In this document: piece after piece, positions 5,657 to 59,900 of the stretch | Layout of the letters: every line of letters begins with the position of its first letter | How positions within the stretch are numbered: position 1 is the first letter of the stretch | From: Octopus sinensis | Lineage: Eukaryota | Length of the DNA stretch: 64,000 nt | Direction of reading: 5' to 3' | Assembly: GCF_006345805.1 (NCBI RefSeq) | Contig: NW_021832226.1 | Span: forward strand, 1-64,000 | Notes under the pieces: model-generated | The model's database searches: none | The model's input: the letters and a program-made list of their open reading frames with translations, nothing else | Told to the model about the DNA's origin: nothing | Translations under genes and position numbers: made by a program

Positions 5657-5727
5657 GCGCCAGTTGTATAACGGTATTATACCTGCCTTCCAAGCAGGCG
5701 ACCCGGGTTCGACTCCCGGCTGGCGCA
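5657..5727 (+). tRNA. tRNA-Gly (TCC)
   Basis: Acceptor stem GCGCCAG/CTGGCGC, anticodon arm CCTGC-CTTCCAA-GCAGG, T arm CCGGG-TTCGACT-CCCGG. Confidence 0.95.
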
Positions 5728-18129: not shown

Positions 18130-19800
18130 CCAGACGAGTAGACTTTTGTGGATCTGACAGTCACCCTCGGAGAACTGATTTCGGATCAGGTTTTCAGGCT
18201 GCTTAGGCAGGACCCGATCATGAACGCGGGCCATCCAGGAGCGAGGATTTCTCGACGGCATACTGGCGATTTTATTCTGCAGTTTAAGAATTTGGACGAC
18301 CTTGAAGAGTTCAAACAATCTTTGGAGGTTAGTAGTCCCTTTGGACAAGGTGGACATGAGGGGGCGGAAGTTAAGCTTCCTCCTTCCTCTATTATTCTAA
18401 AAAATGTTCCGACATGGATAGAGATGGATGAATTAAGAGATTTTCTCAAAACAAAATTTCTTGTCCTAACAAGCAGGGGAGAGGCAGAATCCATAATCAG
18501 ATTGGGATTGATTATTGGATTTTTAAAGATAAAGGCAGAATGGTTCATAAAACGAGAAATTCAATGTTTTCGTTGTCAGCAGTTTGGACACATTGCTCGG
18601 TTTTGCAAGAACTTGGAAAAATCGGAATGTAAAGAACCATGTGATTTGAGAAAATGTGTTAATTGTGGATCGACTACACATCTGGCAAATTATGGAGGCT
18701 GTCCGAAAGCATTAGAAGCTCGTCGTGAGAAGATGAAGAAATTTGTGAAGAAGCCAAGAATCTCACATAAAGAAGATAAAGAACCTGCCAGATTAGGAAA
18801 TAATAATATTCCAAAGAAAGCTAAACTTGATTTTCTAAATGGACGGACTAGTTGGAATACTGCAGCGGTCGAAAAGAAGGCAGAAAATGCTACTACGCAG
18901 ACAGAAGAACCTGCAGAAGAGGACAAAAATAAAATCTCAGCACAGATGATAAGTACGAAATGTCAGCTAGATTACTCACAAAATTTGGAGAAATTAGAAA
19001 AAAGCATTATAGAAGTAACGAAAACAAAAAAGGATACGAAGCTTTTACTGGATTTGGTGGCGATTCTAAGAAAAGGGATCAGCCACCAAAAAAATCAGAA
19101 GTAATCAGGATAACCCTGATCAATGCCCGCTCTCTTAGAAAGCGGGCCTCAGAGCTGACTGCATTGGTCAGCACAGTGTGTATGGATGTTTTGATAGTAA
19201 ATGAGACAAAGATCAAGAAGGGTAGTTCCTTTAAACTCAATGGATTTTCATCAATTGATATTCCATGGAAGGATGGTTCTATTTCTGGAACTGGAACTTC
19301 AATTTATTATAGAACTAATTTGAAGACAAAGAGGGCTAGAATTATTGAAGAAGATGTATGTGAACTAGTCAGCGTTCAAATACAAACAAATATTGGATGG
19401 ATAACAATTGGAGGTATTTATTCGAAGAAATTACGTAAATACCCATGGATTATTGATGAATTCTTTAACAAAAACGTGAATCCGATTTTAGTTGGGGATT
19501 TGAACTCGAAGCATGTTGATTACGGGTGTGTTACAACAAATCAAGATGGAAAATGTCTTGTAAAGTGGATGAAATCAGGAGAACTGAAAATATTGACGTC
19601 GGCAGAAATAAATCACTATGCAACTTATAGTGGTGATAGACTTGGACTGTTCATAATGCCTCAAAAGATGAGTGAAATGTGCAATCCTCCATATATTGAC
19701 AAAATCGAAGATGCTTATGACGCTAAAGTCAGAAAGATAGAAGATTTGTTACGTCACTTATGGAAATTATGATGTAATTCTTTAGGGTATATGCGAAGAA
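18130..19800 (+). mobile_element. I/Jockey-group LINE: ORF1 (gag, CCHC) plus APE part of ORF2, 3'-truncated
   Basis: ORF 18148-19104 with CFRCQQFGH and CVNCGSTTH; ORF 18960-19772 with INARSL, NETK and GDLNSKH APE motifs. Confidence 0.88.
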
Positions 19801-19942
19801 GAGACATGTGGTGTCTCATAAAATGACCCTATACAATGAAATCAAACCCACTTTAATTAGTTTCTTGTTCTGCTCTTGGCTTTCTTCCTAACTTTAATTT
19901 ATGGGTTTGTTGGGAAATAAAACTTTCTTGTCTTGTCTTGAC

Positions 19943-21327
19943 CAGGGGTTCTCAACCTTTTTAGCTCAAGGGCCAAATCGATAATTAAGATTAGCTTCGC
20001 GGGCCGCACAAAAAATATTTTATATATTTTTATATTTTCCAAGCCGGTAACTCGCTTGCAATCCGAAGTGCAGCCACTGCTGATGGTAATGAGTTTTTGG
20101 ACTCTGTTTTTTCTTTTTTTAATTTCCATTTCCTTTATAAAGAATTACAAGCTAAAAAATCTAAAAAAAGGCGTTGTAACTAAAAAGAAAGTATTATTTG
20201 TTATTAAGTTTTTGAAATCCGGAATAAGTAAAGTCGAAGAAGTTCGTAAAAGCTGACTCGAGTGATTATCCGTGAGATTGTTACGATATTTATTTTTTAT
20301 GCGAATCATTTTCCTAAATATTGATTCGCATAAAAAGTAGATCCAAACATTGATATATTCATATATGCATTGTGTGTTATATTTTTGAATTGTCTTGAGG
20401 AATTAATTCGTAAAAATTAATAATGGACGCTTTTTTGAACAATGCCGCCAGTTCTATATCATGTTGTAAATTAATGAGTTCTAGTTGAAACTTTGCAGGC
20501 GCATCCTTAATTTCCACGCTGAATGGAGTTGCGAATATTTTCATTAAAGGAAGGAATTTTTTAAAATTCTAAAAATTAAATTTATATAAATGTACCCCAA
20601 AACGTGCTTCAAATTGATTAATTAAATCACCAATTATGGATATGTATTTTTCATAAGCAGCGCCTTCGTTGTTTTCAGATAGTGAATAAAAATGAGATGT
20701 ATCTCCCTCTTTAAGGGAAGTCATCCATAAATATAATTTTTCGATAAACAAGAAATATATCCATATACCTGATAACAGAGTTTGCCTTTTCCTTGTAATT
20801 CAACATTGAGATCCGACAAATGCGTGGTTAAATCAACATAAAAAGCCAAATCGGCAATCCATCTTTCATCGTAAAGTTCATCGAAAATTACTCTGTCTTT
20901 GGTAAACTCCTTAATTTCTGGAAGCATTTATAGAACCTTTAATAAAATATTAAGGCATTTCGAACGACTTAACCACCTCACTTCAGTATGAAAAATAACA
21001 TCTCCATACTCAGCATCAACTTCTTCCAAAAAAGATTTAAAATATCGGTGATTGAGCGCTTTTGAGCGTATCCAATAAACGATATTAACGACTTTTTTGG
21101 AAACATGTTCCATTTTAATGGACTTGGCGATAAGATTTTCTGGTGAATTATGCAGTGATGCCATATTAATTGATCGAAACTATTTTCGGTTATATCTTTG
21201 GAACAATCAATAAATAATTAAATTTTAACATTATTAAAAAATTAAAAAAGTTAGTTACTCTAGAGGGGCCGCAAAAAAATCCTGCGGGCCGCATGCGGCC
21301 CCGGGGGGCCGCATTTGAGAACCGCTG
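19943..21327 (-). mobile_element. hAT (Buster/SPIN, GTF2IRD2-like) internally deleted transposon
   Basis: TIRs CAGGGGTTCTCAA / TTGAGAACCGCTG; 8-bp TSD GTCTTGAC at 19935-19942 and 21328-21335; FHTEVRWLSR, LAFYVDLTTHL, FQLELINLQ; 27-nt intron at 20569-20595. Confidence 0.9.
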
Positions 21328-23319: not shown

Positions 23320-24926
23320 AAAGAAAGTCCACTAGGTCCCCTTCTCTTTGCCTTGGGAATAAATGGAATAGCTCGGTCGGTTTCTTCCGAACTGAATATT
23401 TGGTATCTGGACGATGCCACTATTGGCGGCTCCCCAGAGACGATTTTAAGAGACGCTTTGTCGTTGGCACCTGCACTTCTGAGGATTGGATTGGAGATTA
23501 ACCCCACCAAATCCGAATTAGTCGGTCTCAACATTCCTGATAAACGCCTTGACGACCTTTCATCGTCCCTCCGCACTGGTCTTGGCCAAGTGCGCGCGAC
23601 TGACGTAAATGATCTCCGGATCCTTGGATCCCCCATCCTGCCGACTGCTATTAAGACTGATCTTCTTACCAAACATTCCACGTTAACTATTTTGCTGGAC
23701 CGCCTCACGTTTTTGGACAGCCACGTCGGCCTGTTTCTTGCGAGAAACTTTTTCGCCCTGCCTAAATTACTCTACTCCCTCAGAAGTGCACCTTGTTACC
23801 TACATGAGGACATTCTCACTGATTTCGGCGACTCCCTTCGTTCGAAGATCGAATCAATATGCAATGTCGAGTTCGACTCTTTGGGGTGGAGTCAAGCTTC
23901 ACTCCCCGTACGCCACGGAATTCGGTGCCCGAATGATGTTGCACTGCCTGCCTACCTGTCGTCACTTTCTTCATGCCAGAAACTCATGGGCACGGTTCTT
24001 CCAACCGATTTTGAACATTACGTGCCCTCTGAGTTATCATCGGCGGTCGTAAAGTGGCACTCGCTAGGACTGGAAATCCCAGAGGATCAGCATAAGCAAT
24101 TTGTTTGGGACGAAGTCCGCCTACAATCCCGAATCCAATCTTTACGTACATCTCTCGACCAACACCGCTTGGCCTGCTTTGAGACGGCATGTCGCCCTTA
24201 CAGCGGAGCCTGGCTAAATGCCACTCCACTGCCGAGCATTGGGAACCTTCTGGACTGCGAGTCCGTACGCACTGGAATCTGTTTACGTCTCGGTCTTCGC
24301 CTATGCGAGCCACATGTCTGCCGCTGTGGCGCGAAAATCTGTCGCTTTGGATTGCACGCTCTATCGTGCAGACGCAGTGCTGGCCGCATCCCGCGTCACG
24401 CCGCTCTTAACGACCTTATCAGGAGAGCCCTGGAAGTCGCCGGAATCCCCTCCCTGCTTGAACCCACTGGGATCGATCGGGAGGACGGAAAAAGGCCTGA
24501 CGGGATCACTGTGTTTCCTTTCAACAGGGGGAAGCCTCTCACCTGGGATGCCACGTGTGTGGACTCTTTCTCGCCTCAGAACCTGCTGATGTCCGCCTCC
24601 GCCCCTGGATCTATTGTCACAACCGCGGAATGCAAAAAGATGCGGAAGTACTCCTCACTTACGGAGAAGTTCCAATTCCTTCCATTCGCGGTTGAGACTT
24701 CCGGTTCCTTGGGCAGTAAGGCAATCAGCTTCGTTCAGGAGATCGGATCCCGCATGTCTGCCATCACAGGCGACGCCCGCGAATCGAGATGGTTTTTTGA
24801 GCAGATATCCCTTGCGATAGTACGCTCTAACTCTTTCTCGATCGCGTCGGCTTCCCGCCCTTGAAGCTTTTAATTAATTAACTTGTAGTTATTGGTTGGT
24901 TTATTGTTTTATTCAAAAAAAAAAAA
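23320..24926 (+). mobile_element. CRE-like RLE non-LTR retrotransposon, 5'-truncated, with poly(A) tail
   Basis: 503-aa ORF with WYLDDATIGG (RT), CRCG...HALSC...RH (Zn knuckle) and KRPDG...WDAT (RLE); A12 at 24915-24926. Confidence 0.9.
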
Positions 24927-31062: not shown

Positions 31063-31844
31063 AATTATTTATTTTAACTAATCAGTTTATTTAATTTTGA
31101 GGAAATAAACAAGAGTTTTTTATCAAACATTTGAATTGAAATATTTTTAGATAGTTTTTTTATTGTAGTATTATAAAAAGCAAGGTCTCCAAGAAGTTTT
31201 ATTTTGCAAGTTTTTTGTTTAGTGGAAAGTTTTAGTCGATTAAAGAAGTTTTTTTATTGACATAGATAGTTTATAGCATGAAATTTCTACTATTCTAACT
31301 ATTCGGGTAATTAAAATTTTTTGATAAGTTATTTTTTCAAATTAAATCTTGGTTATGTGTTTAACTAAAAAAATTTATTGTCTCGATTTTTGGTTAAAGT
31401 ATGGCTGACGGACAATGAAGTATATATTTTTTTAATTTATTTTTTAATGAAATGAAATCAGAAACTAGTAGAGATATATCTGAGAGTCATGAAGTATATT
31501 AATTTTGATCAAAGTAAATTATTGATTTCAACTTAAACTAATCGGGCTTTCGGCAATTACTCACACCTTGACTGTTTAATTGTGTAAAATTTATTATTTG
31601 TAAAATTTGGTACTATTATTAATTTTTTAGTTTTTTAATTATGAATTGATTTAAGGAGCTAAAATTTTTTTATTTTCTATCTTTGCTGAATTTTAAAGTT
31701 TTTGTAGAAACACCCGAACAATTATTAAAGATTTCAATCTTTTTTGTTAATTTATTATTGTAAATTATCTCATCGTGATTATTTCCCATATGAAATGGAT
31801 AAATTCCATATTGATCTGTACTGGCATATTAATCTCAATTTAAT

Positions 31845-32213
31845 CTCCTTAAATCGGTTCAGACACCTGGAGCAGCTGCCTCAATCGCGGAAAACCTTAA
31901 AACCAAAAAATATTCCTTCCTCGGGGACCGCTACAGATTCACCCCTGTTGCGGCTGAGTCATCAGGAGCTGTTGGCCCAGCGACTGCCGAGTTCTTGCGC
32001 GAACTCGGAAGAATGCTCGCCACAAAGAAAAATGATCCTCGTGAAGGAGTATGGCTAAGACAAAGGATCGGAATAGCCATACTCCGAGGGAACTCGCTTT
32101 CCATACAGGCAGCGGGCTTCCTCAATTGATTTCTCAAATCAATCTCTTCTCTGAATTTATTAACTGACATTATTAATAATAAAGTTTTTATTTTAAAAAA
32201 AAAAAAAAAAAAA
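31845..32213 (+). mobile_element. 5'-truncated CRE-like retroposon specific to copy B
   Basis: Encodes PGAAASIAENLKTKKY...AAESSG...RIGIAILRGN*; A19 tail at 32195-32213; copy A has the empty site near 7784. Confidence 0.9.
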
Positions 32214-33588
32214 TTTAATGATTAAAAAAATTTAATGATCATTTATAAATTTATAAATATTCAACAAAAATTAATATTTTATTAAAAATTATTTTTTTTC
32301 TTTAAAAATAAAGATTTCAAAATTTGTGATTTCCAAAAATTGGTTTTAGCATTGGAAAATCACTTTTGAATCTAATTTCTATTGCAAAATAAAATAATCC
32401 TTTTCTCTTTTTATTTTCGACTTTGCTTCAGCACATAAGTTACAATATTAAAGTCTCGTTTTAATAATGAATCGTGCTGTTTGATGAATGTTTAAGTCGA
32501 AATAAATTGATAAATTAAGAGGAACATTAAGTTGATTTTTTTTGTTTCTGGATGACTAAAGTGCAAATTATTTTAAAAGTCATTTAGCGTAAATTTTTTA
32601 TGGATCGAATAAAGCACATTTGTTGTCTGGACATGCTGCTTTTTTCTCTTTATAACCGATCTGGCACATAATCATTAACACATTTATAGGTTTAGTAGAA
32701 TAACTAAGTTATTAAATTGAGTGTCAAAACTAATTTTAATTTTATAGGACTTACAAATTATTTTTGTTGCACAAAGAATATTTTTTAAAAAATTAAATGA
32801 ACATGTGTCTACTTTAATTGCCCTGTCATTATACATTTTTTAAAAGGAAGTACCGGTTTAAAAAATTATCAATTGAGATTGCTATTTTTAAAAAGAAGTT
32901 GAGAGAATTTCCCGCATTAAATCCTCTTAATTTTCAATATTTTACTAATTATTTATTCAGAAACAATGAAAATATTATTCTTTTTCTCCTGAAAAGTCCA
33001 TATGGCAGTTATTCTCTAATTTCCTTGATTAATTGTGTTTTTAATTCTAAAATCGAAATGAGCAATTACTTTATTCAAAGGATTATTTTTTGTTAATCTT
33101 TAAATTATTCAATTGTTTTTAACTACCAAATCATCAAAGTTAAAGCTAATCAACTATTAATATCAAATTTTAATCTTTTTGAAAACTGTCTACTACAATT
33201 TTAAAAAAACGGAATCATCAGAAATGACAATATCTGTCATAAAATTAAACATTTGCTGAATAAAATTTATTTGATTAAAATTTTTTGCCAACTGAGCGTA
33301 TATTTATTGTCTTTTAAGTGTCGGTCTATGCAGACACATTTTAATTTTAACAAAGGCGAGTGCGTGAACGTTAAATAATATAGATCCCATTCTTCGTTAA
33401 AAACACAAATTATGAACTATAATTCCAATTATTTCCGAATCGCTTCTATTCCGAAAGCAATTCAAAATAGTTACAGTGATTTGAAATTCTGCCAAAATAT
33501 TCCAAAATTATGTAATATGCGAACAGAATTCAAGTTCTTATATTTATTTTAAAATATTTGTAGTAATTCCAATGAAACAAAAGGCATA

Positions 33589-34977
33589 ATGAATTCTGAA
33601 CATTATCTTAATGAAGGGTCTCCATTCATGGTAATGCTTAAATTATATAGTGTCAAAAACAATATCAGTTCATTTAAATATTGATAAAATGAATTAATTA
33701 GTGTATTAATTAAATGAGAAAAGTATCACGTCACGCACCTGCATTGAAATTGTAGTTTAATGCATAGAATAACGCAGGTGCTTTGGGCTGAGAGTTACTT
33801 GAGAATTTTTTATATTAAAAAAACTGAATTTAATTGTGTTTAGATAAATGGAATCGACCAGCTACCAGCCCGTAATATTAACATCTCTCCAAATGACTCT
33901 GCTCAATATTATCAAAATTCTTATCCGCTTTATTACCCAGTTTTTGTATATTTTTAAAGTGACAGCTTTCCTATGATCAAACTCGACAATATGGTCAAGC
34001 TACTATGGAAACTCCCGAAATACCCTCCACGTAAAAATACTTGTGATAATGGTAGAACATGTTATTCTGGGATTTATGAATTTGAAGTCTCGTTTTCACA
34101 GCCCGAAAAGGAAACAAAGTCTACAAATTGGACGGTAAAAACATTAGATTTCTGATTTGAATAGTATTCGAAATTAAATCATAAAGTCTATGTTCGTCCA
34201 TTTTGCCAATGTCCTGTGAGATTTCGCTGCATTTCATCCATACCAACTGGATTTGTTATTCGGAGTATGGCAGTGTATATGAAACCCGAACACGTCAAAG
34301 AAATTGTAACAAGATGCCCAAACCACGCTTCTTCAGATCACAGTATTGATCATATTTATTTAAAAATTATAGGTCACATAGCCCCTTCGCATTTAGTCCG
34401 ATGTAGTGATAGAAATGCATTTTACTCTGATGATAATAAAAGAGAAAGTGTTATTGTCCCTTTCTCAACTCCTCAACGTATTATTTAAATATGACCTTAT
34501 AGCGGGCTGCGAGTGGCTAACTTTTTTATATCAGTTTATGTGCTATGGTTCATGCACAGGTGGACTCAATCGCAGACCAATACAATTAGTCTTTACTTTA
34601 GAAAACGAGTATTTAAAGTTTTAAAATATATTTAAAGGTCTTTTGTTGTGGTTGGAAGAAAGGTGGTTGAAGTAAGAATATGTGCATGTCCCGGTAGAGA
34701 TCGGAGATCTGATGAAAAAACATCTAATTCTTCTGATAATAAAAAAAGAAAGAAAAATATACATCCATCTTCTAAAATACCTCGAAATTCTCCAAATTTG
34801 GATAAAAATGGCCAATTTATTTTAAACGTAGTTCCCGATTGATGATTATTTCAGGTACAAGGAGAAAGTAATTTTCAACTACTGAAGACTATCCGCAACT
34901 ATCTTTACTTTATTTCCAATTCTAATATCAATGATGATCAAAGTTACATAGAGGAAGGGAAAAGTCCTTTAGAGTAA
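33589..34977 (+). CDS. TP53: p53/p63/p73-family transcription factor, copy B, apparently intact
   Basis: Same exons as copy A with TAC at 34423-34425. Zn ligands (C/H in RCPNH, two C in MCYGSC) and DNA-contact Arg equivalents (NRR, VRIC, GRDR) are conserved; stop at 34975-34977. Confidence 0.88.
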
Positions 34978-36140
34978 TTCTTGTTTTTTAATTTAGTTGA
35001 GCGAGAAAGGCGTTGTAAAAGTATTTGGTTTCGTTAAAATGCATGAATTGAATTTTTTTAATATTAAAATTAAAAAATCTTATTAGTTTTTTAAAAAATT
35101 TTGTAATCTATAACAACAGACATTCATCTTTAATAGATTGGAAATTTTAATTTATTTTTTTGTCCAAAGTGTCAATAAAATAATATTTGATTGATTTATT
35201 AATTTTTTCCAAACTCAATTAAATGATGAGAAATTTCATTAAGCCGGTTATGATTCTAATTTGCTCTCAATAAAACTTGTCTGGAAATAAATATCTCATC
35301 ATTATACTGATACAATAACTATTAACCTAGTTATGTTAGTAATATAAAGAAAATAAATTGTTCTTAACTAGTTTGTTTAAAAAATTTAGAATTTCAAAAG
35401 TAAATATTACAAATCCAATTTTTTGTCAGGCACTGCAGTTTGTTTTTAAAATTTGTAAAAATGCACGTTGTTTCTAATTTTGATCGTTGGACTTTTTTTC
35501 AGGACAAAATGACTTTCAAATATTCAATGAAGAATTTAAGACGATGAGGCCGATTAGCTTTGAAAAATTTCTTTGCAGATTTTGGAAGTCCGTAACATAT
35601 AAACATAAGTTATTAGAATGTTGTATGGTTCATTTAGAAATGATAATTTTTAAACATTATAACAAGTTCTTACAAATTTAGGCATCGGCATCTATGCGTT
35701 TTGCATAGGTTAAAAGCATCTGGTCGTCTTCGGATATTCCCATTGAGATTGCCAAAAGATGCGTCTTTGAGTGAGCCCCAAACCCCACTTGCCTAGGATT
35801 TAGTCAATTTTGTCAAAACTCATATATTGAGAATCGATTCTGCTGACAATTCCAAACTACTCGAAATTTGAGAGGAGACTGGACATAAACCTTCAAAGCC
35901 ACCGCAGCTAGTCTTTCAAAACGATCTAATTTGCCTCTTGATGTTTTCTTCAGTTTCACAGAATAGACGCAATCTTTCGGGAAAATAAAAAGCCAGATGT
36001 CATTGGAGGGTTTGCTGAAAAAATTAGTTTCAAGCTCTGTAAGTGATTCGCCTCCAGTAAGTGAGAGTAAGAAGAAGGTGTCAAAACAATGTCGTGGTAT
36101 ATGGCAGTTAAAATAGGTTCTCCGGATATTTCCTTCAGCA

Positions 36141-37993
36141 ACTGTATAGCTGACCTACTTGTGAGTGCGTCCAGAATCACTGGTGACACGGAGGAGAGCG
36201 CTTCTATTTTAAATAAAGTAATATTATCAAAAGTTGTTTAGATATAGCCGACAATCTTGTGGGTGCGTCCAGAATCACTGGTGACACGGAGGAGGGCGCT
36301 TCTATTTTAAATAAAGTAATATTATTAAAAGTTGTTTAGATATAGCCGACAATCTTGTGGGTGTTCATGTGTTCCTGCAGAAATCCAGAAGCGGTGATTA
36401 TGTTTTGGTGGCGGGAGGCAAAAATTAAGTCATCAGCGTAGGAGAGAAGTAGAGTATTATGTTCGTCGGGATATTTGACAGATGTAAGTTAAATAAGGCA
36501 GGTGAAAGGACCGAGCCTTGGGGAACTCCGTTAGGCAAGTATTTGTAGCGTGAGTAAGAAGACATGATTGTGGTGCGACCAAGACGCCCAGAGAGAAAAA
36601 GAGTAGCCATGACTTTATTTGGTGGGGGAATTCCGTATCGGTTATTTTCCTACACAGAACGTTCTTGACGTTCTGTCAAATGCCTTTTCAATGTCGATGG
36701 ATGCAATAATTGTTCTTTGAGGTGGCTTATGATTGTTAAACCCATCCGCATGAATTGTGTCAGTTTTGAAAGATGGGTGGAAGTGGAATGCAAAGAACGA
36801 AAGCCATGTTGAGATTCAGCAAGTGGGAGGAAAGGTTTTATGATGCTCAATACAACTCGCTCTGTTATTTTTGAAACCACTGAGATCAAAGAAATCACTC
36901 TTTCGTCCTGGCTGAAATGCAATCTTTTAACCTTCTCCTTCCAAATCATCTGTTACGCTATTCACAACTGACCGCCGTCAGTTCAACTTAGAGCCTAAAC
37001 TATTCCTAGACAACACTCCACTCCCAGTTGAAAAATCCCCCAAAATCTTGGGTCTGATATTTGATTGCTGTTTGTCCTTCTCGAAACATGTTTCATATAT
37101 CTGTGGAAAATCCCAGAAAAAACTCAATGTGCTCCGAGCTATTGCGGGGACTTCATTTGGGCAGGATAAGGAAAGTCTAACAACTGTATACAAGCAGTTT
37201 ATAGAACAACTATGAACTACGCCATCCCTGCTTGGGGTTCCTGCTTATCTAATACAAACCTTGAAAAACTTCAGAGAACTCAAAACTCAGCATTACGAAT
37301 TATTACCGGCTGTCTAAAAACGACACCTACGACCACCTACATTGGGAATCGAAAATCCTTCCAATCAGTGACCATTTTGAAATGCTCGGGCTGCAATTTC
37401 TTAACAAATGCCGAACCCTAAATCACCCTGGCTACTTCCTCTGGCACCACTAACAACAGGAGAATAGTTCCGACCCTCGCGGACAAAGTCCGCAAGCTTA
37501 TACGATCCCCTCCGGACATTAACCAGAAGGGGATTCACGACCTGGTGGCTACGAGGGCAATCAGATGTCTTGGAATAAACAAGCTTCTGGGACGCCCTCC
37601 GCCGCCAATTAATAAGATCGAATCCTCCCTCTCAAGAGAAGCCCGAGTGAACTTGGCTCGTCTCCGCTGTGGCCACCATACTGGCCTACACGATTATCGC
37701 ATAAAAATCGGTCTTGGTGAAATAACCCCTTCCTATTCCCTCAACGACCTTTTCTCCTGTCCAGGCCCGCCTTCTACTTCCTCGGAACACCGGATCACGA
37801 TCGGGGATCTTTGGGAGCGTCCGACATTGGCCCTAACGTTCTTGTTAGCCACCGGCTTCCTTCAATTGAAGGGGCCGGGGGTAAATAAATAAATAAATAA
37901 TAAATCTTGTGGGTGCGTCCAGAATCACTGGTGACACGGAGGAGGGCGCTTCTATTTTAAATAAAGTAATATTATCAAAAGTGGTTTAGATAT
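36141..37993 (+). repeat. ~98-bp tandem repeat (about 3 units) interrupted by a LINE
   Basis: GTGCGTCCAGAATCACTGGTGACACGGAGGAG(A/G)GCGC...AAATAAAGTA recurs near 36166, 36264 and 37913. Confidence 0.85.
36364..37902 (+). mobile_element. I-group LINE with 5' inversion
   Basis: 36364-36899 is RT on the minus strand (RVISLIS, QHGFR, GVPQGSVLSP, YADD); 36900-37902 is the C-terminal part on the plus strand with a (TAAA)n tail; 13-bp TSD AATCTTGTGGGTG at 36351-36363 and 37903-37915. Confidence 0.9.
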
Positions 37994-38459
37994 AAAAATC
38001 CGATTAGTTTTTGAATCCAGATTTTGATTTTTAAATGCTATCCTCCGGAATCTTCAGCTCTGATATGACCTCTCATCACAAAAAAGGACTTGAACGGGCT
38101 CGCCAGAGCATTTAATGAAAACTCCTGTCGTTTTCCTGTCCGGGTTATTTCTGCGGAGTGTTTACTTTTTTTCTTTTTCAAAAAATATGAATCTGAATCA
38201 TGTATCACGTACAAGGCTTTCAATACTCTATGTGTCCCCAATCGAATATAAGCCTTAATTTAAATTTTTCCTTAAAATTAAAGGTAAACGAATATAGTTT
38301 ATCGTATAATATAAGCCCTATCCATTTTTATACAGCTTGATTGCCAATTTTAAATGTTTTAAAAGATATGATTTTTTAGTCGGTCTCTCTGGCGTGTTTT
38401 ACGTTCTCAACCAAAAAACATACAAATATGCTCTTTCGTTGGGAAATTTTTAAAAGAAC

Positions 38460-40902
38460 TTTTTTGCCGATAAACACAGGACTTTTTTGCCGATAAACAC
38501 AATCATTTGTCAATACTCCTCGGGGATCTAAATGCCAAATGCACATCTTTTGGCTGTCTGAGAACCAACAGGGATGGCATCATTCTTAAGAAGCTTTCAG
38601 AATCTCTCAGTTTCTCGGTCATCACATCAAAAACCCCAAATCATTACTCACCAGGAGGGTGGGACTATTTGGGCGTAGCATTGGTCTCTATGTCTACTCT
38701 TCAATTTATGGAACAACCGTACACCTTAAATGATATTGGAAGTGACCATCTACCAATTTTATACAAACTCAACCTTGGACCTTTAAAGGGTAAACCAACT
38801 TTTATACGATATAACCTCTCGACTATAAACTGGGAACACTACCGAAAATGTTTTACACTTTATCTGAGCAATTTCGCTCCTAAACTTGACGAAAATTCTT
38901 CATCTGAGGACCTCGAGAAGTCTAGCAATTCCCTTATTGGATACATAAAGTCTTATCTGGAAACATATTCTACAAAAATCGTCTCAAACAATAGGAAAAC
39001 TCACATGCCAAACATGAATGTTGAAATCCTACTAAGGAAAAACAATGTCTAAGGAACAAACTCCGGCGCTGCGCAGATTTTCGTGACCGGTCCGTTTTGG
39101 AAAGTGAAATCTTCACCATTACGGAAGAAATAAGAAAATCGGCGAAGGTGGCGAAGGATAAAAAATGGAATACTGAGTGCAAAAAGCTACATAAAGGAAG
39201 TCCAAATTTTTGGAAGGTCTACTCGAAATTAACCTCGACGTCTGAGAAAACTATACCTAAACTGCTAAAACAAGATGGATCCCCTGCATCTCATGAAGAA
39301 ATCCCGAACATATTTGCTGATAGTCTCAAAAGAATACAAGAAGTCAATCCGGATACAAATCTATCTGATTCAGCTTTGTTTGATATGGAAAAAGAGTTGG
39401 AAGACAATCTTAGCTCATTACCAATGTGCTCGGAATCTATAACGTGCAAAGACGTGGAAAATGCAGTTAGATACTCCAAAAATAACGCTCCGGGAAAGGA
39501 CAAGATAACCATGCGCATGTTCAAAGAAGCTCCCAAGCAACTTTACGAATATTTGGGATGTCTCTTCTCCCGCAGTGTGAGCTTGGGATACGTCCCTTCT
39601 TCATGGAAACTGACGGAGGTAAGGATGATACGGAAGCCTGGAAAACCTGGTTACTTGGCGACAAGTTATAGGCCTATAAGCCTAATTCCTACCATCAGTC
39701 GAATAATGGAAAGGGTAATGTTTGAACGACTCTCTGAACACGTCGAGAGAAATGGTTATCTCAAAGACGTGCAGTGGGGCTTTCGGAGGGGTCGTTCCTG
39801 TGCTGACTGTCTTTATACACTCAATTCGTCGATTGTAAAGGCTCTGGATTTCAAAGAGTGTCTGACAATTGTGTCTCTAGACATCTCAAAAGCCTTTGAT
39901 ATGGTTTGGCACCTCGGTCTCCTTAGACATCTGGCGAAGTGTCACATAGACAAAGGACTATTCCTATGGCTAAAAGACTTCCTCCGCGACAGGCGCTCTG
40001 TGATAAGCTTTCTGAACTATGACTCGGATGAACTGAAACTTAAAAGAGGCGTCCCTCAAGGATCAGTCCTCAGTCCTCTATTATTCAACATTGTGATGAG
40101 CAATCTGCCGTCTCCTGTCAACACACGGACGGAAATTTTGATATACGCCGATGATGTTGTAATCCTTGACATTTCATCGAAACCTGCCTTATCCGAACAA
40201 AGGATTATATCATATATGAATACAGTGGAGCAATGGTGCGATGAAAATATGTTCATTATTGCGCGTGAGAAGTCCGCATTACTGAGAATCACAGAAAGCA
40301 GAAATTTAATAAATTTACCGTGCCTGATCAAGAACATACCTCGACAAAACTCAATTAAATATCTTGGCTTGTTCATCGATGAAAAGGGAAACTATCTCGA
40401 AAACGCAAAATTAAGTAAAAGGAAAGCAACTAATGCTCTGTTCTGCCTGAGGAAGTTAAATTTGGAGCCTGATACTTTCCTCTACGTTTTCAATACGGTG
40501 ATCCTACCGGGACTACTATACGGAAAAGAGGGATGGTACTTCTCTAAAAAGAAGGACACCATCTTAACTAAATTTGAAAAGTCTCGCAGGCTCGCTTTGA
40601 AGCTTGCTTACCACCAAAAAGTTGAAGATCCAATCCCCCTGTGGCTTGAAAGTAAATCCTCCATGGTCGGTGAAACTGTCGAAAAAGCTATAAGTGGTTA
40701 TAAATCCAACTCAATTGTCACTGGGACGTACCTGCAGAGGTAGAAAAGAAAAAAAAAAAAAAAAAAAAAAATTTTACTTGAGGGGGTCTCTTTTTTTTTC
40801 TGGGAAGAAGTCGATAGGGTAGTCCTATTGTTTCATTATACAAACTCCCCCCTAACCTTTAACCCTTCTCTGTTTCCAATAAAACTTCCTATTCCTATTC
40901 CT
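38460..40902 (+). mobile_element. I/Jockey-group LINE, 5'-truncated in APE, RT ORF open
   Basis: GDLNAK...GSDHLP (APE); 548-aa ORF with YRPISL, QWGFR, LDISKAFD, GVPQGS, YADD; internal A23 (40749-40771); (CCTATT)n end; 40-bp flanking direct repeat. Confidence 0.9.
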
Positions 40903-45678: not shown

Positions 45679-47525
45679 CTAGCTCGGCAGCTCGCTTCGC
45701 TCACCGCGACCTAGCTCCTGCGGAGGGCCTGTTTCATCAAACCACTATAAGTTTATGTAGATGTATAAAACTACCTGGTTAAATGTAACCCTTCTATCGC
45801 CTGTTAATAAACGATGTTTGTCGTCCGTCCTTCCTTGGCATATATGAATAAATTTTTCTTCTGCCTACCCTCGAGCATCCCACATACAGCTGTCCATGTG
45901 AAAAGCACTCACTCTCTAAAAAAACCCAACTACCTTTAATGACTGTCCCTGGGCCTTGTTTATTGTCATTGCACACTTTTTTTTCATTTTTTGTGGTTTA
46001 TTTTTTTTATATTTAATTTTTTCATTTTTCCTTTGTAATTTCCTTTTTTTTCTTTTTTTTTTTTACTGGCGGAAATGGGCAGGGGGAGATGCGGCAGGCG
46101 GAAATGCGGCAGGCAAAAAGCGACACACAAAAAAGCGACACACAAAAAGATTTAATTAATTACCTTATTAAGCTGACCGTTTTTTTCTCAGCTTCGTTTT
46201 TCCTCCTTCGGTTATCTATTAAAAAATTATTTTGAATAATATAAAAAGTTTAGGAAAAGAGGCATACCGAAAATAAATTCTATCTTTACGAAAAACTCAA
46301 GTAAATAGTTAATATTTTTACGCAAATTCTTCTGATTGCGCTGTCAATTGGTGGTAAATTGTGTTAATGGTTGTGCTAATGTGGTTTCAACTATCAAAGT
46401 GTTTTTCAAAATCTGTTAATTGCAACACTCTATTCAAGGTCGTGCGTCAATTGGTGGTAATTGTGTTAATGATTGTGCTAATGTGGTTTCAACTATCAAA
46501 GTGGTTTTTCAAAATCTGTTAATTGCAACTCTATTCAAAGTCGTGCAATCTGTGATTGCACATTCTGTCAAAGTCAAATATGATAATAGCTTTAATTTTG
46601 ATTCATGGTCGATAATGATATATGCATTTAATTTTAAGAGAAAAAACATAGGATGAATTGAATTTCTTTATCGCGAATAATTGGGAGTTCATCATTGTTA
46701 ATATTCTCGCTGTCGTTTTCATCAAGGATATTCTTAATACGTGAGATTTTTGCCTTGAAGGTTTTAATGGACCTCATCATGAATGTCGAGGACATTCGCG
46801 TTGTTCATTTTAATCAAAATGCAGAAATAATTTTTTGATTTTTTTGGGGAAAGGTTTTAAGGACTTCATCATGTAAGTCGAGGACATTGTAGTTGTTCAT
46901 TTTAACCAAAATGCAGAAAATTTTTTTTTAATTTTTTTTGGGGGGAAGGTTTTAAGGACTTCATCATGTAAGTTGAGGACATTGTAGTTGTTCATTTAAC
47001 CAAAATGCAGAAAATTTTTTTTTAATTTTTTTTGGGGGGAAGGTTTTAAGGACTTCATCATGTAAGTCGAGGACATTGTAGTTGTTCATTTTAACCAAAA
47101 TGCAGAAAATTTTTTTTAATTTTTTTTGGGGGGGAAGGTTTTAAGGACTTCATCATGTAAGTTGAGGACATTGTAGTTGTTCATTTTAACCAAAATGCAG
47201 AAAAATTTTTTTTAATTTTTTTGGGGGGGAAGGTTTTAAGGACTTCATCATGTAAGTCGAGGACATTGTAGTTTTTCATTTTAACCAAAATGCAGAATTT
47301 TTTTTTAATTTTTTTTGGGGGGAAGGTTTTAAGGACTTCATCATGTAAGTCGAGGACATTGTAGTTGTTCATTTTAACCAAAATGCAGAAAATTTTTTTT
47401 TAATTTTTTTGGGGGGAAGGTTTTAAGGACCTCATCATGTAAGTCGAGGACATCGTATTGCCAATTTGAAGTTGGTGTGCACACACAGACAGACAGACAC
47501 ACACCATACCATTTTATTATTAAGA
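45679..47525 (-). mobile_element. Non-autonomous Helitron (~1.85 kb)
   Basis: 5' TC after A at 47525, followed by a (TGTC)n-like tract; 3' GC-rich hairpin then CTAG before T at 45679; Pif1-helicase C-terminal remnant CFSHGQLYVGCSRVG. Confidence 0.88.
46760..47455. repeat. ~93-bp tandem satellite (about 7 units) inside the Helitron
   Basis: Unit CATTTTAACCAAAATGCAGAAAA(T)nAA(T)n(G)nAAGGTTTTAAGGACTTCATCATGTAAGTCGAGGACATTGTAGTTGTT. Confidence 0.95.
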
Positions 47526-48642: not shown

Positions 48643-48714
48643 TAGCGGAACGAGGTTTCGATCCTCGGACCTCTGGGTTATGGGCCCAGCGCGCTCCCAC
48701 TGCGCCATTCCGCT
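48643..48714 (-). tRNA. Initiator tRNA-Met (CAT)
   Basis: Starts AGCGGAA (A1:U72); anticodon arm TGGGC-CCATAAC-CCAG; GGATCGAAACC T-loop characteristic of eukaryotic tRNAi. Confidence 0.95.
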
Positions 48715-49050: not shown

Positions 49051-50697
49051 ATGGTGTTCGCTGCAGACAAAATTTCAAATCTTCTGCAAACTCTTTCAGT
49101 CCCTTTCAACAAAACTATTCGTCCTATAGAGGCTTCCTCGGGATTTAACATGCACTGTATGGGAACTATCAGTTCAACACATCTTGAACAAAAACCTTCA
49201 GTCCTCTTCATGGGTTCCTACTCTTCTGGAAAGACATCTGCAATAAAATACTTACTTCAAATTGATATTGCCGAACTTCGAGTTGGTCCCGAACCAACAA
49301 CAGATATATTCCATGTTCTGACATATGGAGAGAAACAAGTCACTGTTGGCGGAATAATTCTGATGAATGATCCACATTTTGGCTTCCAGAATTTTTTTCC
49401 TCATAATAAAGATATTGCCCGCCAATTTCAGTTGACGCGGATCAACAATATGTGTCTGAAAGCCATGGACATAATCGACAGTCCCGGATTTCTTAGTGGG
49501 GACAACATGGATGTACATCGAGGATACGATCTCCCAGGAGTATTAACAGAGTTGGCCACGAGAACAACCAGGATTTATATGATGATGGACGTTTTCAAAG
49601 TCGATTTCTCCTCTGAATGTAAAGATACGTTAAGACAAATGAGACCTATGCTGGGGAAGATGAGATTAATTTTCAATAAGGCAGACTATATTGATGAAGT
49701 AAATTTGATGCGCCTTTATGGAGCTTTCATGTATCATTCAGGTAAATTTGTTATTTGATATCAAAGGAATGACATTTGGGGCCCCGGAAGTTCCTCGTGT
49801 TTTTATCTGCTCTTTATGGGATAAACCCTATAAACACGACCCCTATAGAGACTTGTTTGACAAAGAAAAGCTCGAGTTGATGAATGATTTACAAAAATTA
49901 CCAGTATACCATTACCCACATATAATGGGTAATTTAATTGTGCGTCTGAACTGCTTTTTGGTAAAGTTTAGGAAATTACATGTAGAGATATTTGGTGACA
50001 ATTAAACAATTTAAGAAAGTAATTCCAGTTTTCAAAAAAGAGAAAAAGAAAGAGGAAATACTTCTAAATTTTAAAAACTTCTACAATGATGTTTTGATTG
50101 AAGAAGAAATAGTTACAGGTGATTCCATAGTCTACAACCAAATTTTCGAAGCTGTGGTTAGTTTTGAGCAAATTTGAGTAGTAGAAAGTTTTAGATGTAA
50201 ATAATCTTCCTGCCACCTGCAACAGAAAAAGTATTGACGCGGTCAAATTTCTATTAAAAAATGTTGTTCCAAACGTATTGGGGAAACTCAACGCCATTCT
50301 CAACGAGTTTGATCAAGATAAAATAGAAGGTGGGGTTTTTGGAATTGTTAATGCTTCAAACAAACTGATTGAGAAAGAAGTGGAAAATAGTCTGTGTATT
50401 ACAGCAGAACATATTGAAAAAGCAGACAAAATCTTCGCTACATTCCAGATAGTGGATGGAAGAGCTGATTCAGCACAAATCAAGCCGATTATGATGGAAT
50501 CTAAACTGCCTTATGAGTCATTGGCGAAGATTTGGGAGCTTTCTTGCAATACGTTCGACGGGAAAATGGATATTTTTGAATGGAGAATAGCCAGTTTCCT
50601 TATTTTCCATTTGACGAATGGAAATGTTCTTCCGGCTACACTACCAGTGAATTTAAGAGCATCTTCAATGCGTTCTGAAGCAGATTCGGAAAATTAA
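49051..50697 (+). CDS. EHD1: EH domain-containing dynamin-like ATPase (EHD/RME-1/Past1 family)
   Basis: GSYSSGKT P-loop, VGPEPTTD, IIDSPG, FNKAD, APEVPRVFICSLWDKP, C-terminal EH domain (ESKLPYESLAKIW); 25-nt intron near 49742; one 1-bp slip near 49992. Confidence 0.85.
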
Positions 50698-51220: not shown

Positions 51221-51740
51221 ATGGACGAGTTTGAATTACATCCCCTCTCCTGCCTCCGTAGTCCAGGCCATGCGCCTCGCCACAGCAAAGTGAATGACAT
51301 TGTGAGGAGTTCCTTCGAACCTGTCGGTTTGGACAGAGGTGACGGCAAACGCCCTGACGGCTTAACTACATTCCCCTTCGAGCAGGGAAAATCCCTTATA
51401 TGGGATTCTACCTGGTGTGAGACATTCTCCAACGGGAACCTAGGAATGTCGGCCGTCAACCCAGGCTTCGCTTTCAATCGCGCTGAAGATCTCAAAATTC
51501 AGAAGTACGGTCACCTTTCTACTTTTGTTTTCATGCCCATCGCCATTGAGACTTCTGGGGGTTTTGGCCGCAAGTCGCTTTGTTTCCTACGCGGTTTGGG
51601 GAAAAGAATCGCCAAAAGGAGGGACGACCCGAAAGAGTCTTTTTGGCTTCTTCAACGCCTCTTCATTGCCGTAATCCGCGGGAACTGTTTTGCAATCCGC
51701 GAGGCTGGGAGGGCGCCCTAAACTGCGTAGTCTTAAACAA
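51221..51740 (+). mobile_element. CRE-like element 3' fragment
   Basis: HPLSC...RH, DRGDGKRPDG, LIWDST, IAIETSG, IRGN. Confidence 0.85.
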
Positions 51741-54719: not shown

Positions 54720-55310
54720 TTTTGCCTGGACCCGGCATCTGCTCGGGGGGCCAATACCGATGTGGTAGTAAAGTCGATACCAAAGGATTACACCCCCTTT
54801 CATGCAGAAAGAGCGTTGGCCGTGCACCCAGACATTCCGCCATCAACGATATCATTTTGGCTGCGTTCAAGCTGCTGGATTCCTCTCCGAACTGGAACCT
54901 GTTGTGCTTGACCGTGTAGACGGAAAACGTCCTGATGAAGTCGCAGTTTTTCCGTGGATTAATGGGAAATGCCTCGCGTGGAACTCCACGTGTATGAACA
55001 CTTTCTCAAGGACGAATTTAGTCAACTCAGTCCAGAGTCTGCCGCTAAAAAAGCTGAAGAACTCAAAAATCTCGAAATACTCTAACTTGAAGGACAACGT
55101 GATCTTTTCCCCAATCTCCGTAAAAACATCCGGAGCCATGACCAACAAATCTCTGAAGCTTGTTGCGAGAATCGGGCAACTAATCTCCAGAAGAGGACGA
55201 GAGCCTCGGGAGAAGCAATCGCTGTTCCAAAGAATCTTCATTGCGATTCTAAGGGGTAACGTCTTCTCGATCATTTGTAGTTTTAAATCAAAACTACCTT
55301 AATCTTATTC
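54720..55310 (+). mobile_element. CRE-like element 3' fragment
   Basis: CGSKVDTKGLHPLSC...RH, DRVDGKRPDE, LAWNST, ILRGN; same subfamily as 1490-2190. Confidence 0.85.
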
Positions 55311-56917
55311 CTAACATAAAATATTAAAGATATAACTCCTTTTCTTGTCATTTAGACCCACTGTGAGTTGTTTGTTTATGCACGGTATTATAGAATTTTG
55401 CCATCTCTGCTGATTTTCGTTCTTCGTCGAATGTGGGATGTGAGATAGAAATATTTTCAAAACCAAACTGTATTCTACAATATTTCATATTCCTTTTTGT
55501 GAAGGCATGAGGTTTCAAGCAAATGTAATTATACCATTACAAACGACCTACCTGTGAAAAATCTCAAAGAAAACCAGATGAATTTTAATCACATGTTTTC
55601 CGTCAATAGCCAATTTTAAAAGTATGCTTACAGCCATGAGTTGAAATTCAAAGGTGAACTTCAAAGATGAAATAGACAAGGGGCTCATAGGGCAGAAGTT
55701 TCGACAAACAGATCTGTTATAAAGGTAAATTGGAATTATTCGATTGATTTAAAAAATTCAAGGAAACCTTATTAAGACCTCAAAAAATTGACATAAAACC
55801 GATGGATTTTCAGAAGATTGACAAAAATGTGCGGAAAATTGTCACTGACAATCAGATTAACATGACACGAGATAACAAGAAAAGACTGTACTTAAAAGTA
55901 ATACACTTATAGGGGAACTTGAATTTGTCGAGTTGAAATCTGAACAAATGTTGACCCAGTTTTTAAATGACGTAAAATAAAAGTCAGTATACTGGCTGTT
56001 AGGCACGATTGTAGAGTGTGTTAGTCAAAAATATAGTATCTAAACTTACTTAGAAATAGCGTTCAGACTCTAATGAAGATGCAAAATAAATTTTTGATAG
56101 AACGCATTAACAAGAAATCAATTCATTCTGTTTTATTCAATTGTCTGAGTGAGCCTGGAGTGTACACATCCAGCCCTGATAATGGTTAAGGCAACCAGAA
56201 TTCCCTTAAAAACTGACTAAACTTTTGGTCCCGATTCACCTCATAGACCATCACTGCCATTTTATTTTCGATATACGGAATCTCTCCATTTCGAATACCG
56301 GCCGTATTTTGTAATCCCAATTTGAATTTTTTGGGCCATAAGCCGGCCTTTTGACATCAATCATTGATCCTATTAGCCGTCTTTAACCTTGAAATGCGAA
56401 CAACGATAGATATATATTGCAAAAACTTGACAAAAAATCAAAAACTACCACAAAATCGATCAAGTTGCGAATTGTCTTTAAAGAAGAAAATTCAAATAAT
56501 AAATCAATCGATACCATCCAAAAATTTATCTCTTAGATGCTATTCGGTGGATTAGCACAGCTTGGATGGACGTGAAATCAAACATCCTACTAATTTGCGT
56601 GGCACTCCAGTAAAAATATATGATATAAATGATAATCTTGAACAAATTTACTGTTCACACCCTTTATGAATAGACTAGTCGATCAAACAGTTTCAGTTTC
56701 TGTAGATAGTGACAGTGACTTGGATTCTGATAAGCAAACAGAGCCAAAACATGGGAAAATGTAAAGTTAATTTATTCGTGCGTGTCTATAGTTTACCAGG
56801 CGAGAGGCTATGGAACAATTAACACGCATAAATCTTCAACAAATGCTATACCAAAACTGCCACTTTTCTTGCACTCAAAAATTTGCATCACTCGATTTTG
56901 TCAATAGACTGATCTAT

Positions 56918-59900
56918 TATTATTATTATTAGCACTTCCCGTAGGAACATAAACAAGGAAAGGAGAGAGTTATATTCCCACACGTGCCACACACGATACA
57001 ATCTTCTTAACCATCGTTTGCCATCCTCTGCGGTTTTGTGCAAGCCATCGCAGTTCGTCCAAGTCCTCGCATTTTTTCAGGGTTTTGCCCACGTGTTTCA
57101 GATCGTGTTCCAGCGCAACCGGCAGTGTTGTGCGTGGACGTCCGCGAAACTTTGGGCTATCCGAGAGAAAGTACTCTTCCATGGCTTGGTAAGCAGGTGA
57201 GGACGGGTCCATTCTCAGGACGTCCGTCCGAAAAGCCTCCAGCGGCCATCTATGATGTCCTGGCTGACTGGCACCGAGTACTGAGTTTGTAGAGCGATGA
57301 GTTGTTAATTTTCTTAGGCCAATGCAGACCATTTAGGACGCGAAGCTGTTTTCTGTGAAACGAGTCAAGATTCTTTAGTTCGGTGTCAGAGATGCCCCAT
57401 GTAGATGAGTTGTACAATAGTACCGGTTTGACAAAAGCGTTGTAGATTCTAGAGCGTAGTGATGGGTTCCCGGGGCAATATCGTAGCCAATCTTTCATGA
57501 CGGATTTTAGAGCAACAGCGGCCAGTAGCTTTCTCCGCATGATGTCTTCTCGGTCTCCAAGCAGAGAGCCAAGCTTCTTCGAAAGTCTCCATTTTTCCAT
57601 AGTTTGGGTATCCGAGCGTGATACATCGACCACGTCAGTCTTGTCCGTTGAGGTGGCGACGTACCTCTCTTGCACAATGTCTAAAACACACACAGTACAA
57701 CCGGACAGGCTATCAATTCTATCCTTTAACGTTCGTGGACTCTGCCAGACCTGGAAACAACAAGCACTCTGTAATGACATGGATAAATATCGTGCGGACA
57801 TCGGCTGTCTACAAGAGACCAAACAAAAATCTGGAATGGACCTAACCTATGGAGATTACCGAATGATCTTGCTACCCTCCGACTGCAGACACTATGGACA
57901 AGGTTTTGTGATTCACAAGAGGCTCGGTGTCAAACGCTGGTGGAGAATTACAGATAGGATTTCAGCAATCCAAGTACAAATCGGCGGTAAAGGCAGGCCC
58001 AATGCAGTCGCAACGGTCATTAACGTATACGCCCCGCACAGTGGCAGAATCGTCAACGCTCCTGAAGAAATCGATGAATTCTATGAGGTACTGACCCGGA
58101 CATACCTATCCTTACAATCGTCTACCCTCCTGCTTGTCGTCGGCGACTGGAACGCCAAGGCTGGCATCCGTCGAGGCACTGAAACTTTTATTGGACGGAA
58201 GAGGGTATAGAAACCTCCCAGGAGCCCTATTGGCTAATTTCTGTAAAACACTCGGGCTATTCCTATGCAACACGGCCTTTGATCACCCTGCTCGGCACAA
58301 GTCTACCTGGACTGGCAGGAGACGTGGTGAAGACGGGAACTTTGTGTGTCGCCAAAGAGACACATGGCTTCTACAAGACTCTTGTTCTTACGGGGGCTTG
58401 GTCGTTGACAGTGACCACAAGATAGTCATCGGCAGATTCAATCTGAAGAAATTATATGTGCTGGATAAAACAAATCGTCAATTCCCTCATAAATCGGACA
58501 GATACCTGACAGAAAAACTGGCTCCCTCACTATCGACTCGAAACCTCTATAAATCATCCATCGATGAATCCCTTAAAAACATGGAAACTGGACTTATGCC
58601 TTCAGCCGCTTGGAAGGCAATGTCAGCCAACATTCACTCGGCGGCAAATAAATATGTTGGAAAGCAGCCAAAAAATACGCACTTTATCGGGCTGTGTCAC
58701 CCGGATGCTCTTGCCTTGTCAGTTGTGCAAAAGGAGCTTAAGCTGAGGACTGAGAACACCAAAGATATGGATACCAAACTCGCACTGAAAGGCCGGCGTG
58801 CTGCCATCCAAAAACAAATAAAGACCCTAAACCTCCAATATGGCCGGGATATCCTGGCTTCCCGTCTTGGAGAACTGGAAGCCCTCAAAGATAATGCACG
58901 CACGTTTATGGCTTTACGGTTGCTTAAGAGGAAGAAAAACTGCCCCAAACTTCGACTCCAAACCAGTAATGGGGTTCAAATATCTGACCCGGGAGAACAG
59001 GTGGGAGTCATTGCGGACTATTTTGAACAACGATTTAACGCTAACACCGAACAAATCTCGCCTTTCTCTGGCCCAGCACGACGACTGAAGAATACAATCT
59101 CCTTGAAGGAAGTTACAAAAGCTGTTAGCAGGCTCAAGAATATTAATGCGGAGCTGCTGGAATACGGGCCCGAATCTCTTCTATGCAACATCACGAACAT
59201 TCTCAACGATATGTTTGCTACAAAGACTCACTCCCACTGGGCTCTGGAGTTCTCATCCCTATTCAAAAGCCGAACAAAACCTCTTGGTCCAGTAGAAAAT
59301 CTCCGCCCAGTCATTTTGCTAAACTCCCTGAGGAAGGTTCTCTCGCTGATGTTCTGGATTGGAGACAAAGTCAATGACTTTCTGTCACCGAGTCACAGCG
59401 GATTCAGAGAAGGACGTTCAACCGCAGATGTTCTTTGGGGCCACCGATGGCGGTGTGCAACCCACCAAAGATACAAAAGTGCCACGAGAATCCTGGGTAT
59501 CGATATGTCAAGAGCTTTTGATTCCATCCATCGCGATCTCCTCATGAGGGTTCTACGGAGTTTCTTAGATGAAGATGCTATCAGAATGATACAGGTCTTA
59601 TTGGCAAAAACGGACCTCACTGTTCGCCTTGGGACAACGTCGTCCAGATCCTTCCCAACAAATGTGGGAACCCCCCAAGGAGACTCTCTCTCGCCTCTGT
59701 TATTTGTGATCTACCTTGAGGCTGCTTTACGAGAGCTGAGAGGTCTATATGACAAGTCAATAACTGAAGTGATTTACGCTGACGACGTCGACTTTGTGTC
59801 CACTGACAAATCCGCCCTACTCAGACTATTGGAGATTGCACCGGACTTGTCGAAGTGGTCGAGTTTTTTTTTAGAAGATAATTAAAAAATTAATTTTTTA

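Follow-up and report, generated by a model that had tools for sequence, protein, structure and literature searches.

A base-exact, TSD-flanked 5'-inverted LINE outside the L1 lineage in Octopus sinensis and its probable origin by twin priming

How does a single retrotransposon copy come to lie with its two parts on opposite strands? The question is raised by a locus in Octopus sinensis, within a 64,000-nucleotide stretch of contig NW_021832226.1 (assembly GCF_006345805.1) that was analysed as a whole and is referred to here as the window. The segment at 36364–37902 is a single decayed non-LTR retrotransposon copy of 1,539 bp, truncated at its 5' end and composed of two arms on opposite strands, with a G+C content of 45% vs 34% across the whole window. 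The original prediction, made from the letters alone, had described it as one LINE with a precise 5' inversion, and the present analysis bears this out: the RT is split between the arms, which meet to the exact codon. The mechanism considered here is known from other systems, and what is new is its probable occurrence in a non-L1 LINE of a cephalopod. The features of the locus, together with a second inverted LINE in the window, are collected in Table 1.

Table 1. Positions of the element arms, their junction features, the host target and a second inverted LINE in the window
Feature	Position	Strand	Description
Host target, left	36158-36363	.	2.1 units of a 98-bp tandem repeat
Left TSD, AATCTTGTGGGTG	36351-36363	+	13/13 direct repeat; 3' end ..GGGTG-3'
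Inverted 5' arm	36364-36895	-	532 nt; RT from (RP)ISL to YADD...FLQEHM(N)
Sense 3' arm	36896-37881	+	(N)TLSSWL, KSSVTLF, KILG, thumb region, RLRCGHH, decayed Cys/His motif; from translations
CAC microhomology	36896-36898	+	Complements the GTG-3' that closes the left TSD
ORF at end of plus arm	37545-37892	+	Stop codon at 37890-37892, within the (TAAA)n tail
3' tail, (TAAA)4TAATA	37882-37902	+	Read from the sequence
Right TSD, AATCTTGTGGGTG	37903-37915	+	Initial AA(T) equally assignable to the tail
Host target, right	37916-37994	.	Remainder of the third 98-bp unit (BLAST of flanks)
RTE-like inverted LINE	56916-60555	two-strand	Endonuclease and RT to YADD on plus, remainder of RT on minus

Read on the reverse complement from 36895 to 36364, the inverted arm encodes ISLISVVSK, QHGFR, IDIEKAFD and GVPQGSVLSP in succession and closes with YADDLIFASRHQNIITASGFLQEHM(N), its final codon extending into the left TSD. 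This translation upholds the earlier claim that the minus arm ends in FLQEHMN(T) at the left TSD. The plus arm then reads (T)LSSWLKCNLL and, including its tail, covers 36896–37902 (1007 nt). The same opening, LSSWLKCNLL, had been predicted for this arm and stands as a reading, with the start moved from 36900 to 36896 on grounds given below. When the two arms were stitched into one protein, Pfam RVT_1 was matched at E=2.1e-25 over profile positions 10–203 of 205, and 691 database homologues were retrieved, the top match reaching E=2.5e-101 at 41% identity over 98% of the query. The tblastn matches of the inverted arm fell on the minus strand and those of the sense arm on the plus strand. The minus arm is 45–49% identical to four homologues (P0001–P0004), and the sense arm is 35–36% identical to two of them (P0001 and P0002) over 340 aa.

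The copy has accumulated at least seven frameshifts and several stops, distributed as at least three frameshifts and one stop in the minus arm and at least four frameshifts and several stops in the sense arm. The truncation lies within the RT, so the copy has neither an endonuclease nor the N-terminal portion of the RT. Because it lacks these parts and is also inverted, the copy could never have been functional; it is a copy that decayed after insertion and affects no recognisable gene. Full-length homologues (P0011, P0013, P0017 and others) carry an EEP endonuclease (PF14529), and their domains are ordered as EEP endonuclease, RT and a short C-terminal RLRCGHH...Cys/His motif, without RNase H. 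Judged from these homologues, in which the endonuclease itself is seen, the element would be a non-LTR retrotransposon of the endonuclease (APE/EEP) type. The copy itself displays two LINE features, a LINE-type RT and a simple-repeat tail beside a TSD. At 37878–37902, the element ORF closes with a stop codon inside the (TAAA)n tail, about 8 residues past the ends of the homologues, which leaves essentially no 3' UTR in the copy; either the 3' UTR of the element family is very short or absent, or the native stop codon was lost.

The central observation concerns the contiguity of the two arms. In 14 of 15 homologues, separate BLASTP searches with each arm placed the two on neighbouring subject residues, leaving a gap of 0, and the join FLQEHMN–TLSSWL is gap-free in the multiple alignment. 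Of the two ends of the inverted arm, the one from which the protein continues into the sense arm adjoins the left TSD, not the inner junction. An uninverted relative at 18875–19957 of another Octopus sinensis contig (L001) keeps both parts collinear, preserves the LQ(8 residues)WL spacing and shows 50% amino-acid identity to both arms. This locus, which encodes homologue P0066, was considered as a copy of the same family and rejected, being at 50% amino-acid identity a member of a different one, and it is useful only as an uninverted comparator. Searches by blastn revealed no other copies of the element family in the 64-kb window. Among the close relatives in a set of 5.8 billion proteins, identity reaches at most 41% over the full length and 48–50% over the RT core, so distant that a family consensus is impossible from them.

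No sequence common to both arms was detected by blastn or by a repeat search, and a fold-back or inverted-duplication model was rejected on this ground. The minus arm also has neither its own 3' tail nor its own TSD, which, together with the lack of sequence shared between the arms, excludes both a pair of independent insertions and a fold-back duplication. The placement of the contiguous end beside the left TSD is a topology that arises only through twin priming or through an inversion broken precisely where the element ends.

The target of the insertion is a tandem repeat, with a period of 98 and 97% matches to the left of the element (Tandem Repeats Finder), and its repeat unit is interrupted exactly after GGGTG. 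A repeat search found the TSD to be identical at 13 of 13 positions and to enclose the whole two-arm structure; a 13-bp TSD around the whole had been foreseen, with its right-hand copy misplaced by 1 nt. When the flanks were joined with one copy of the TSD, the result was 99/100 identical to the intact border between unit 1 and unit 2, and this match defines the ends of the element to the base. The left end is thus fixed to the base, and the right end to within the AA(T) common to the tail and the TSD. The intact border thereby serves as an empty site of paralogous kind. With a target that repeats every 98 bp, a 13-bp duplication is formally indistinguishable from an 85-bp deletion of the target; the duplication is preferred, being the usual outcome and of typical length.

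Beside the insertion lies the edge of a 4.6-kb direct duplicate (7200–11779 and 31269–36220). Its two copies lie 24 kb from each other and match at 99.3% identity, and copy B contains about 367 extra bp at 31845–32211. The duplicate stops inside the first 98-bp unit, 143 bp leftward of the site at which the LINE was inserted. A segmental duplication, a long repeat and an assembly duplication are all conceivable origins. Copy A was considered as an empty-site allele and rejected, as it stops 143 bp short of the insertion point. The duplicated block includes, at 34216–34624, a pair of overlapping ORFs with Pfam matches to the p53 DNA-binding domain (P53, E=1.4e-14 for positions 46–129 and E=5.7e-12 for positions 119–164), with homologous sequence at about 9780–10190. 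The two ORFs are contiguous apart from one frameshift and have no intron between them, a structure that points to either an exon of the p53 family or a processed pseudogene.

The two junctions of the inverted arm were then resolved at the level of single bases. At the outer junction, ..AATCTTGTGGGTG is followed directly by TTCATGTGTTCCTGCAG, which on the reverse complement reads CTGCAGGAACACATGAA followed by CACCCACAAGATT; at the inner junction, ..GATCAAAGAAAT abuts CACTCTTTCGTCCTGG. The interval between M and L at the join is exactly two residues in all homologues, and the minus arm supplies only the AA of the first codon in this interval, so that the CACT at 36896–36899 is needed to complete it and these are bases of the plus arm. 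The initial base of the plus arm is accordingly placed at 36896, with the start CACTCTTTCG. On this assignment, the inner join is blunt, with zero element sequence lost or gained.

The opening CAC of the plus arm forms three perfect pairs with the GTG at the end of the left TSD, and extending the comparison to GGGTG and CACTC gives five pairs with one G·U, in agreement with the primer microhomology of 3–5 nt that had been proposed for the end of the TSD. A 3-nt match would arise by chance with a probability of about 0.015–0.02 for this base composition; the complementarity is therefore consistent with priming, weak when taken alone and not a proof of it. As deduced from the plus arm alone, the RNA at the priming site would have read ..AUGAA-CAC-UCUUUCG.., and the microhomology is conditional on 36896–36898 belonging to the plus arm. 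An assignment of 36896–36901 to the minus arm, which would then read R-V-ISL, is possible in principle and would imply a loss of 4 nt at the junction and put the microhomology beyond testing. It would, however, set Val at the Pro of YRPISL, a residue that is invariant across the aligned homologues, and we consider it unlikely.

The locus very probably records one retrotransposition into a 98-bp minisatellite of the octopus genome, completed by twin priming. It shows three of the features expected of this process, namely opposite arms of which the sense one is tailed, an inverted upstream arm with its 3'-most end at the 5' TSD, and a single TSD flanking the whole. We infer the succession of the nicks, both primings and the joining by repair from the anatomy of the element and the published model (Kojima 2010, PMC2912911). 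The element endonuclease would have nicked the bottom strand at 5'-..AAGATT^GTCGGC-3', and the ..ATT-3' end thus released would have annealed to the (UAAA)n tail of the RNA, priming a first cDNA, which would have become the plus arm and extended back to the CAC at 36896. The top strand would have been cut 13 nt downstream, after ..GGGTG. The resulting 13-nt 3' overhang may then have paired through GTG (perhaps GGGTG, with one G·U) with CAC(UC) in the same RNA and primed a second cDNA, copying the 532 nt directly upstream to give the minus arm. Host repair would presumably have joined the cDNA ends between 36895 and 36896, and gap filling would have yielded the 13-bp TSD. Published data on 5'-inverted L1 provide points of reference for these steps. 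Microhomology at the outer junction is the commonest feature of such copies (PMC2912911), and in human L1 5' inversion goes with TSDs of 10–20 bp (PMC4245944), a range into which the 13-bp TSD fits. An overhang of about 5 nt, as generated by ZfL2-1, was accompanied by zero 5' inversions (Yamaguchi et al. 2014, PMC4245944).

Among the alternatives to twin priming, the one that fares best is an ordinary 5'-truncated insertion of 1.54 kb, followed by a later 532-bp genomic inversion of its 5' part through two breaks and end joining or through a replication error. The final sequence would be identical to that of a twin-priming product, and a copy with at least seven frameshifts is old enough for secondary events. 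Nevertheless, one breakpoint must hit the border between element and TSD within 0–3 nt, for which the odds are about a few in 1500, and the repeat search detected no inverted repeats at the breakpoints that could drive recombination. The second inverted LINE in the window has the same coincidence at its border, and we regard a later inversion as very unlikely.

An assembly artefact, in the form of a local mis-join or an inverted patch in a repeat-rich region, appears slightly less plausible again. The codon-exact join, the breakpoint at the TSD and the intact tail and TSD would all be unexpected from such an error, and the arms are unique within the window, which leaves no partner for a mis-join. 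The context is error-prone all the same, as the locus lies in a tandem repeat at 143 bp from the edge of the 4.6-kb, 99.3%-identical duplicate, and indel errors could account for some of the many frameshifts. Two element ORFs, including the junction-spanning one at 36650–36949, were searched for an independent assembly and gave no exact match on record. Finally, two independent insertions of the same family abutting in opposite orientation, or a copy of an already rearranged master, may be given the least credence of all: LINE pieces are dense (about 7 in 64 kb), yet the minus arm has no 3' tail or TSD and the arms abut to the codon, and in the case of a rearranged master the 5' truncation would still need to hit the contiguity point exactly.

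In I, Nimb, Ingi, LOA and Tad1 elements, an RNase H domain separates the RT from the C-terminal Cys/His motif; Vingi is an RNase H-less lineage within the I group. Pfam detected no RNase H (PF00075) in this interval in either the copy or its 60 best homologues. The stretch from the RT thumb region to RLRCGHH is only about 75 residues long, whereas in RNase H-bearing homologues such as P0063 the RNase H domain fills that interval; RNase H-bearing homologues begin at rank 63, with 34% identity. The absence of RNase H indicates that the element does not belong to the I clade proper; an I-group lineage devoid of RNase H, of which Vingi is an example, and a lineage of the CR1/Jockey group are both possible. 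In a neighbour-joining tree of 95 RT cores, rough in that it was built without labelled Repbase references and without support values, the nearest outgroup consists of RNase H-bearing proteins, and 'jockey'-named proteins lie further away. The label of I group that had been given to the element thus fails for the I clade proper and may hold for the wider I group, since an outgroup of this kind is compatible with an RNase H-less lineage of that group. Database sequences are only 32–49% identical to the element. The nearest named protein is C31C9.5 of C. elegans, which is basal to the clade of the element in the same rough neighbour-joining tree and of which no mention was found in the literature searched. 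The LINE classes of C. elegans are RTE, LINE2/CR1 and Vingi ('I-Jockey') (PMC11662393).

A second inverted LINE of a different clade had also been claimed for this stretch of DNA, and one is indeed present: an RTE-like element with a 9-bp TSD. Its plus strand encodes an EEP endonuclease and an RT that runs to YADD...LLEIAP at about 57677–59846 and resumes at 60528–60555, with Pfam matches to Exo_endo_phos (E=2.7e-8) and RVT_1 (E=6.8e-22), the latter ending at profile position 181 of 205. On the minus strand, the remaining part of the RT runs from about 57700 to 56934, and an (AAT)n tail comes after it. The TSD, GACTGATCT, at 56907–56915 and 60556–60564, became evident only once a nested element of about 680 bp at 59847–60527 was recognised, which breaks the inverted arm; beyond it, the arm resumes in frame as PNLEKVLNLK. 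An ORF at 58134–59885 is still open over 583 aa. Projection onto distant homologues leaves a gap of 16–26 residues between the arms, a figure obtained before the addition of the 10 residues past the nested element. The nested element has a further copy at 62837–63551; the two copies are about 680–715 bp long, about 91–94% identical and in opposite orientations; their terminal inverted repeats measure about 25 bp (GGTACTTTTGTCGAAGTGGTCGCAG), and they have a MITE-like look.

The window thus holds two TSD-flanked 5'-inverted LINEs of different types among about 7 LINE pieces in 64 kb. From this pair, the original prediction had derived a host-determined propensity for 5' inversion, a step that the data do not sustain: two of about 7 pieces are far too few to attribute inversion to the host, and host and element effects are inseparable in such a sample. 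An explanation based on TSD length fits the 13-bp TSD equally well. It is doubtful, though conceivable, that twin priming is frequent across unrelated LINE clades in the octopus or in cephalopods and that inversion is set mainly by how the host handles the integration intermediate; the candidates would be the RNase H-less lineage, with its 13-bp TSD, and the RTE-like element, with its 9-bp TSD, which lie 19 kb apart. If this were true, 5' inversion would not be a peculiarity of L1, and the octopus would offer a natural system in which to separate host from element determinants.

Several other retroelement pieces and repeats were recorded in the window. Another LINE, seemingly 5'-truncated, lies on the plus strand at 38507–40743, 600 bp beyond the right side of the studied copy, with a partial EEP domain (PF14529, E=2.1e-8), an intact-looking RT (RVT_1, E=1.8e-39) and a 548-aa ORF; it belongs to a different family, with about 29% identity to the homologues of the studied element. 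Three plus-strand ORFs (23353–24864, 51221–51721 and 54802–55302) have a C-terminal GKRPDG...W(D/N)(A/S)T after a Cys/His motif, the first of them additionally with an RT YLDD region. By eye, they resemble the 3' parts of restriction-like-endonuclease (R2/R4/Dong-type) LINEs; they gave zero Pfam matches. In the 5' part of a LINE at 18148–19772, an EEP endonuclease comes after a gag-like ORF that bears a CCHC knuckle (zf-CCHC, E=4.2e-5); this part is 92–95% identical at the DNA level to positions 8493–12180 of the Octopus sinensis contig L001. An Rfam scan of the window returned only two tRNAs, at 5657–5727 (+, 63.7 bits) and 48643–48714 (-, 61.6 bits), both far from the element; each may be either a gene or the head of a tRNA-derived SINE. 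A repeat of about 94 bp is arrayed in tandem at 46757–47460 and at 63713–64000, the second array overrunning the window end, with copies 91–97% identical. An exon-like ORF at 49051–49755 is 99% identical to an EH-domain protein of Octopus sinensis.

Twin priming is documented almost only for mammalian L1; among the papers listed in a literature search on it, all concern L1 or mammalian genomes except for one on R2 integration in vitro and one on transgene insertion with retroelement proteins. A base-exact, TSD-flanked inverted non-L1 LINE in a mollusc suggests that priming of the second strand is open to other RTs and other hosts, and the second example from another clade nearby joins with it to warrant a genome-wide census. 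Twin priming itself was reportedly put forward by Ostertag and Kazazian in 2001 for 5'-inverted L1. In L1, small deletions or duplications are often present at the inner junction; the inner junction of the octopus copy is exact, unlike that of many L1 cases. The octopus copy further differs from L1 in its RT lineage, in its (TAAA)n tail in place of poly(A) and in its cephalopod host. In overall architecture, it resembles 5'-inverted mammalian L1 (PMC2912911), in which a TSD, an inverted upstream segment, a sense 3' segment, a tail and a second TSD follow one another, the inverted segment is the sequence directly 5' of the sense segment, the outer 5' junction shows microhomology, as it may in the octopus copy, and the TSD measures 10–20 bp.

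Outside L1, RNase H-less APE LINEs (Vingi and the CR1/Jockey group) share with the homologues of the element the order of EEP endonuclease, RT and Cys/His motif; the octopus copy differs from their full form in that its endonuclease part is missing. Nimb-type elements carry RNase H, and the octopus copy, which has none, is unlike them in this respect. A further parallel for 5' inversion is a single 5'-inverted insert of the I-group element Nimb-2_DR recovered from chicken DT40 cells (Yamaguchi, Kajikawa & Okada 2014, PMC4245944). Like the octopus copy, it is a non-L1 LINE with a 5' inversion, its TSD being about 12 bp long, and it differs in having arisen de novo in a cell-culture assay, whereas the octopus copy is an old germline insertion. 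In the same assays, the L2-clade ZfL2-1 gave zero inversions; across the LINEs compared, inversions were obtained only for L1 in human cells and in the single Nimb insert, and 5' inversion in these retrotransposition assays depended on both the host and the LINE (PMC4245944). That study also poses the question of host versus element for 5' inversion.
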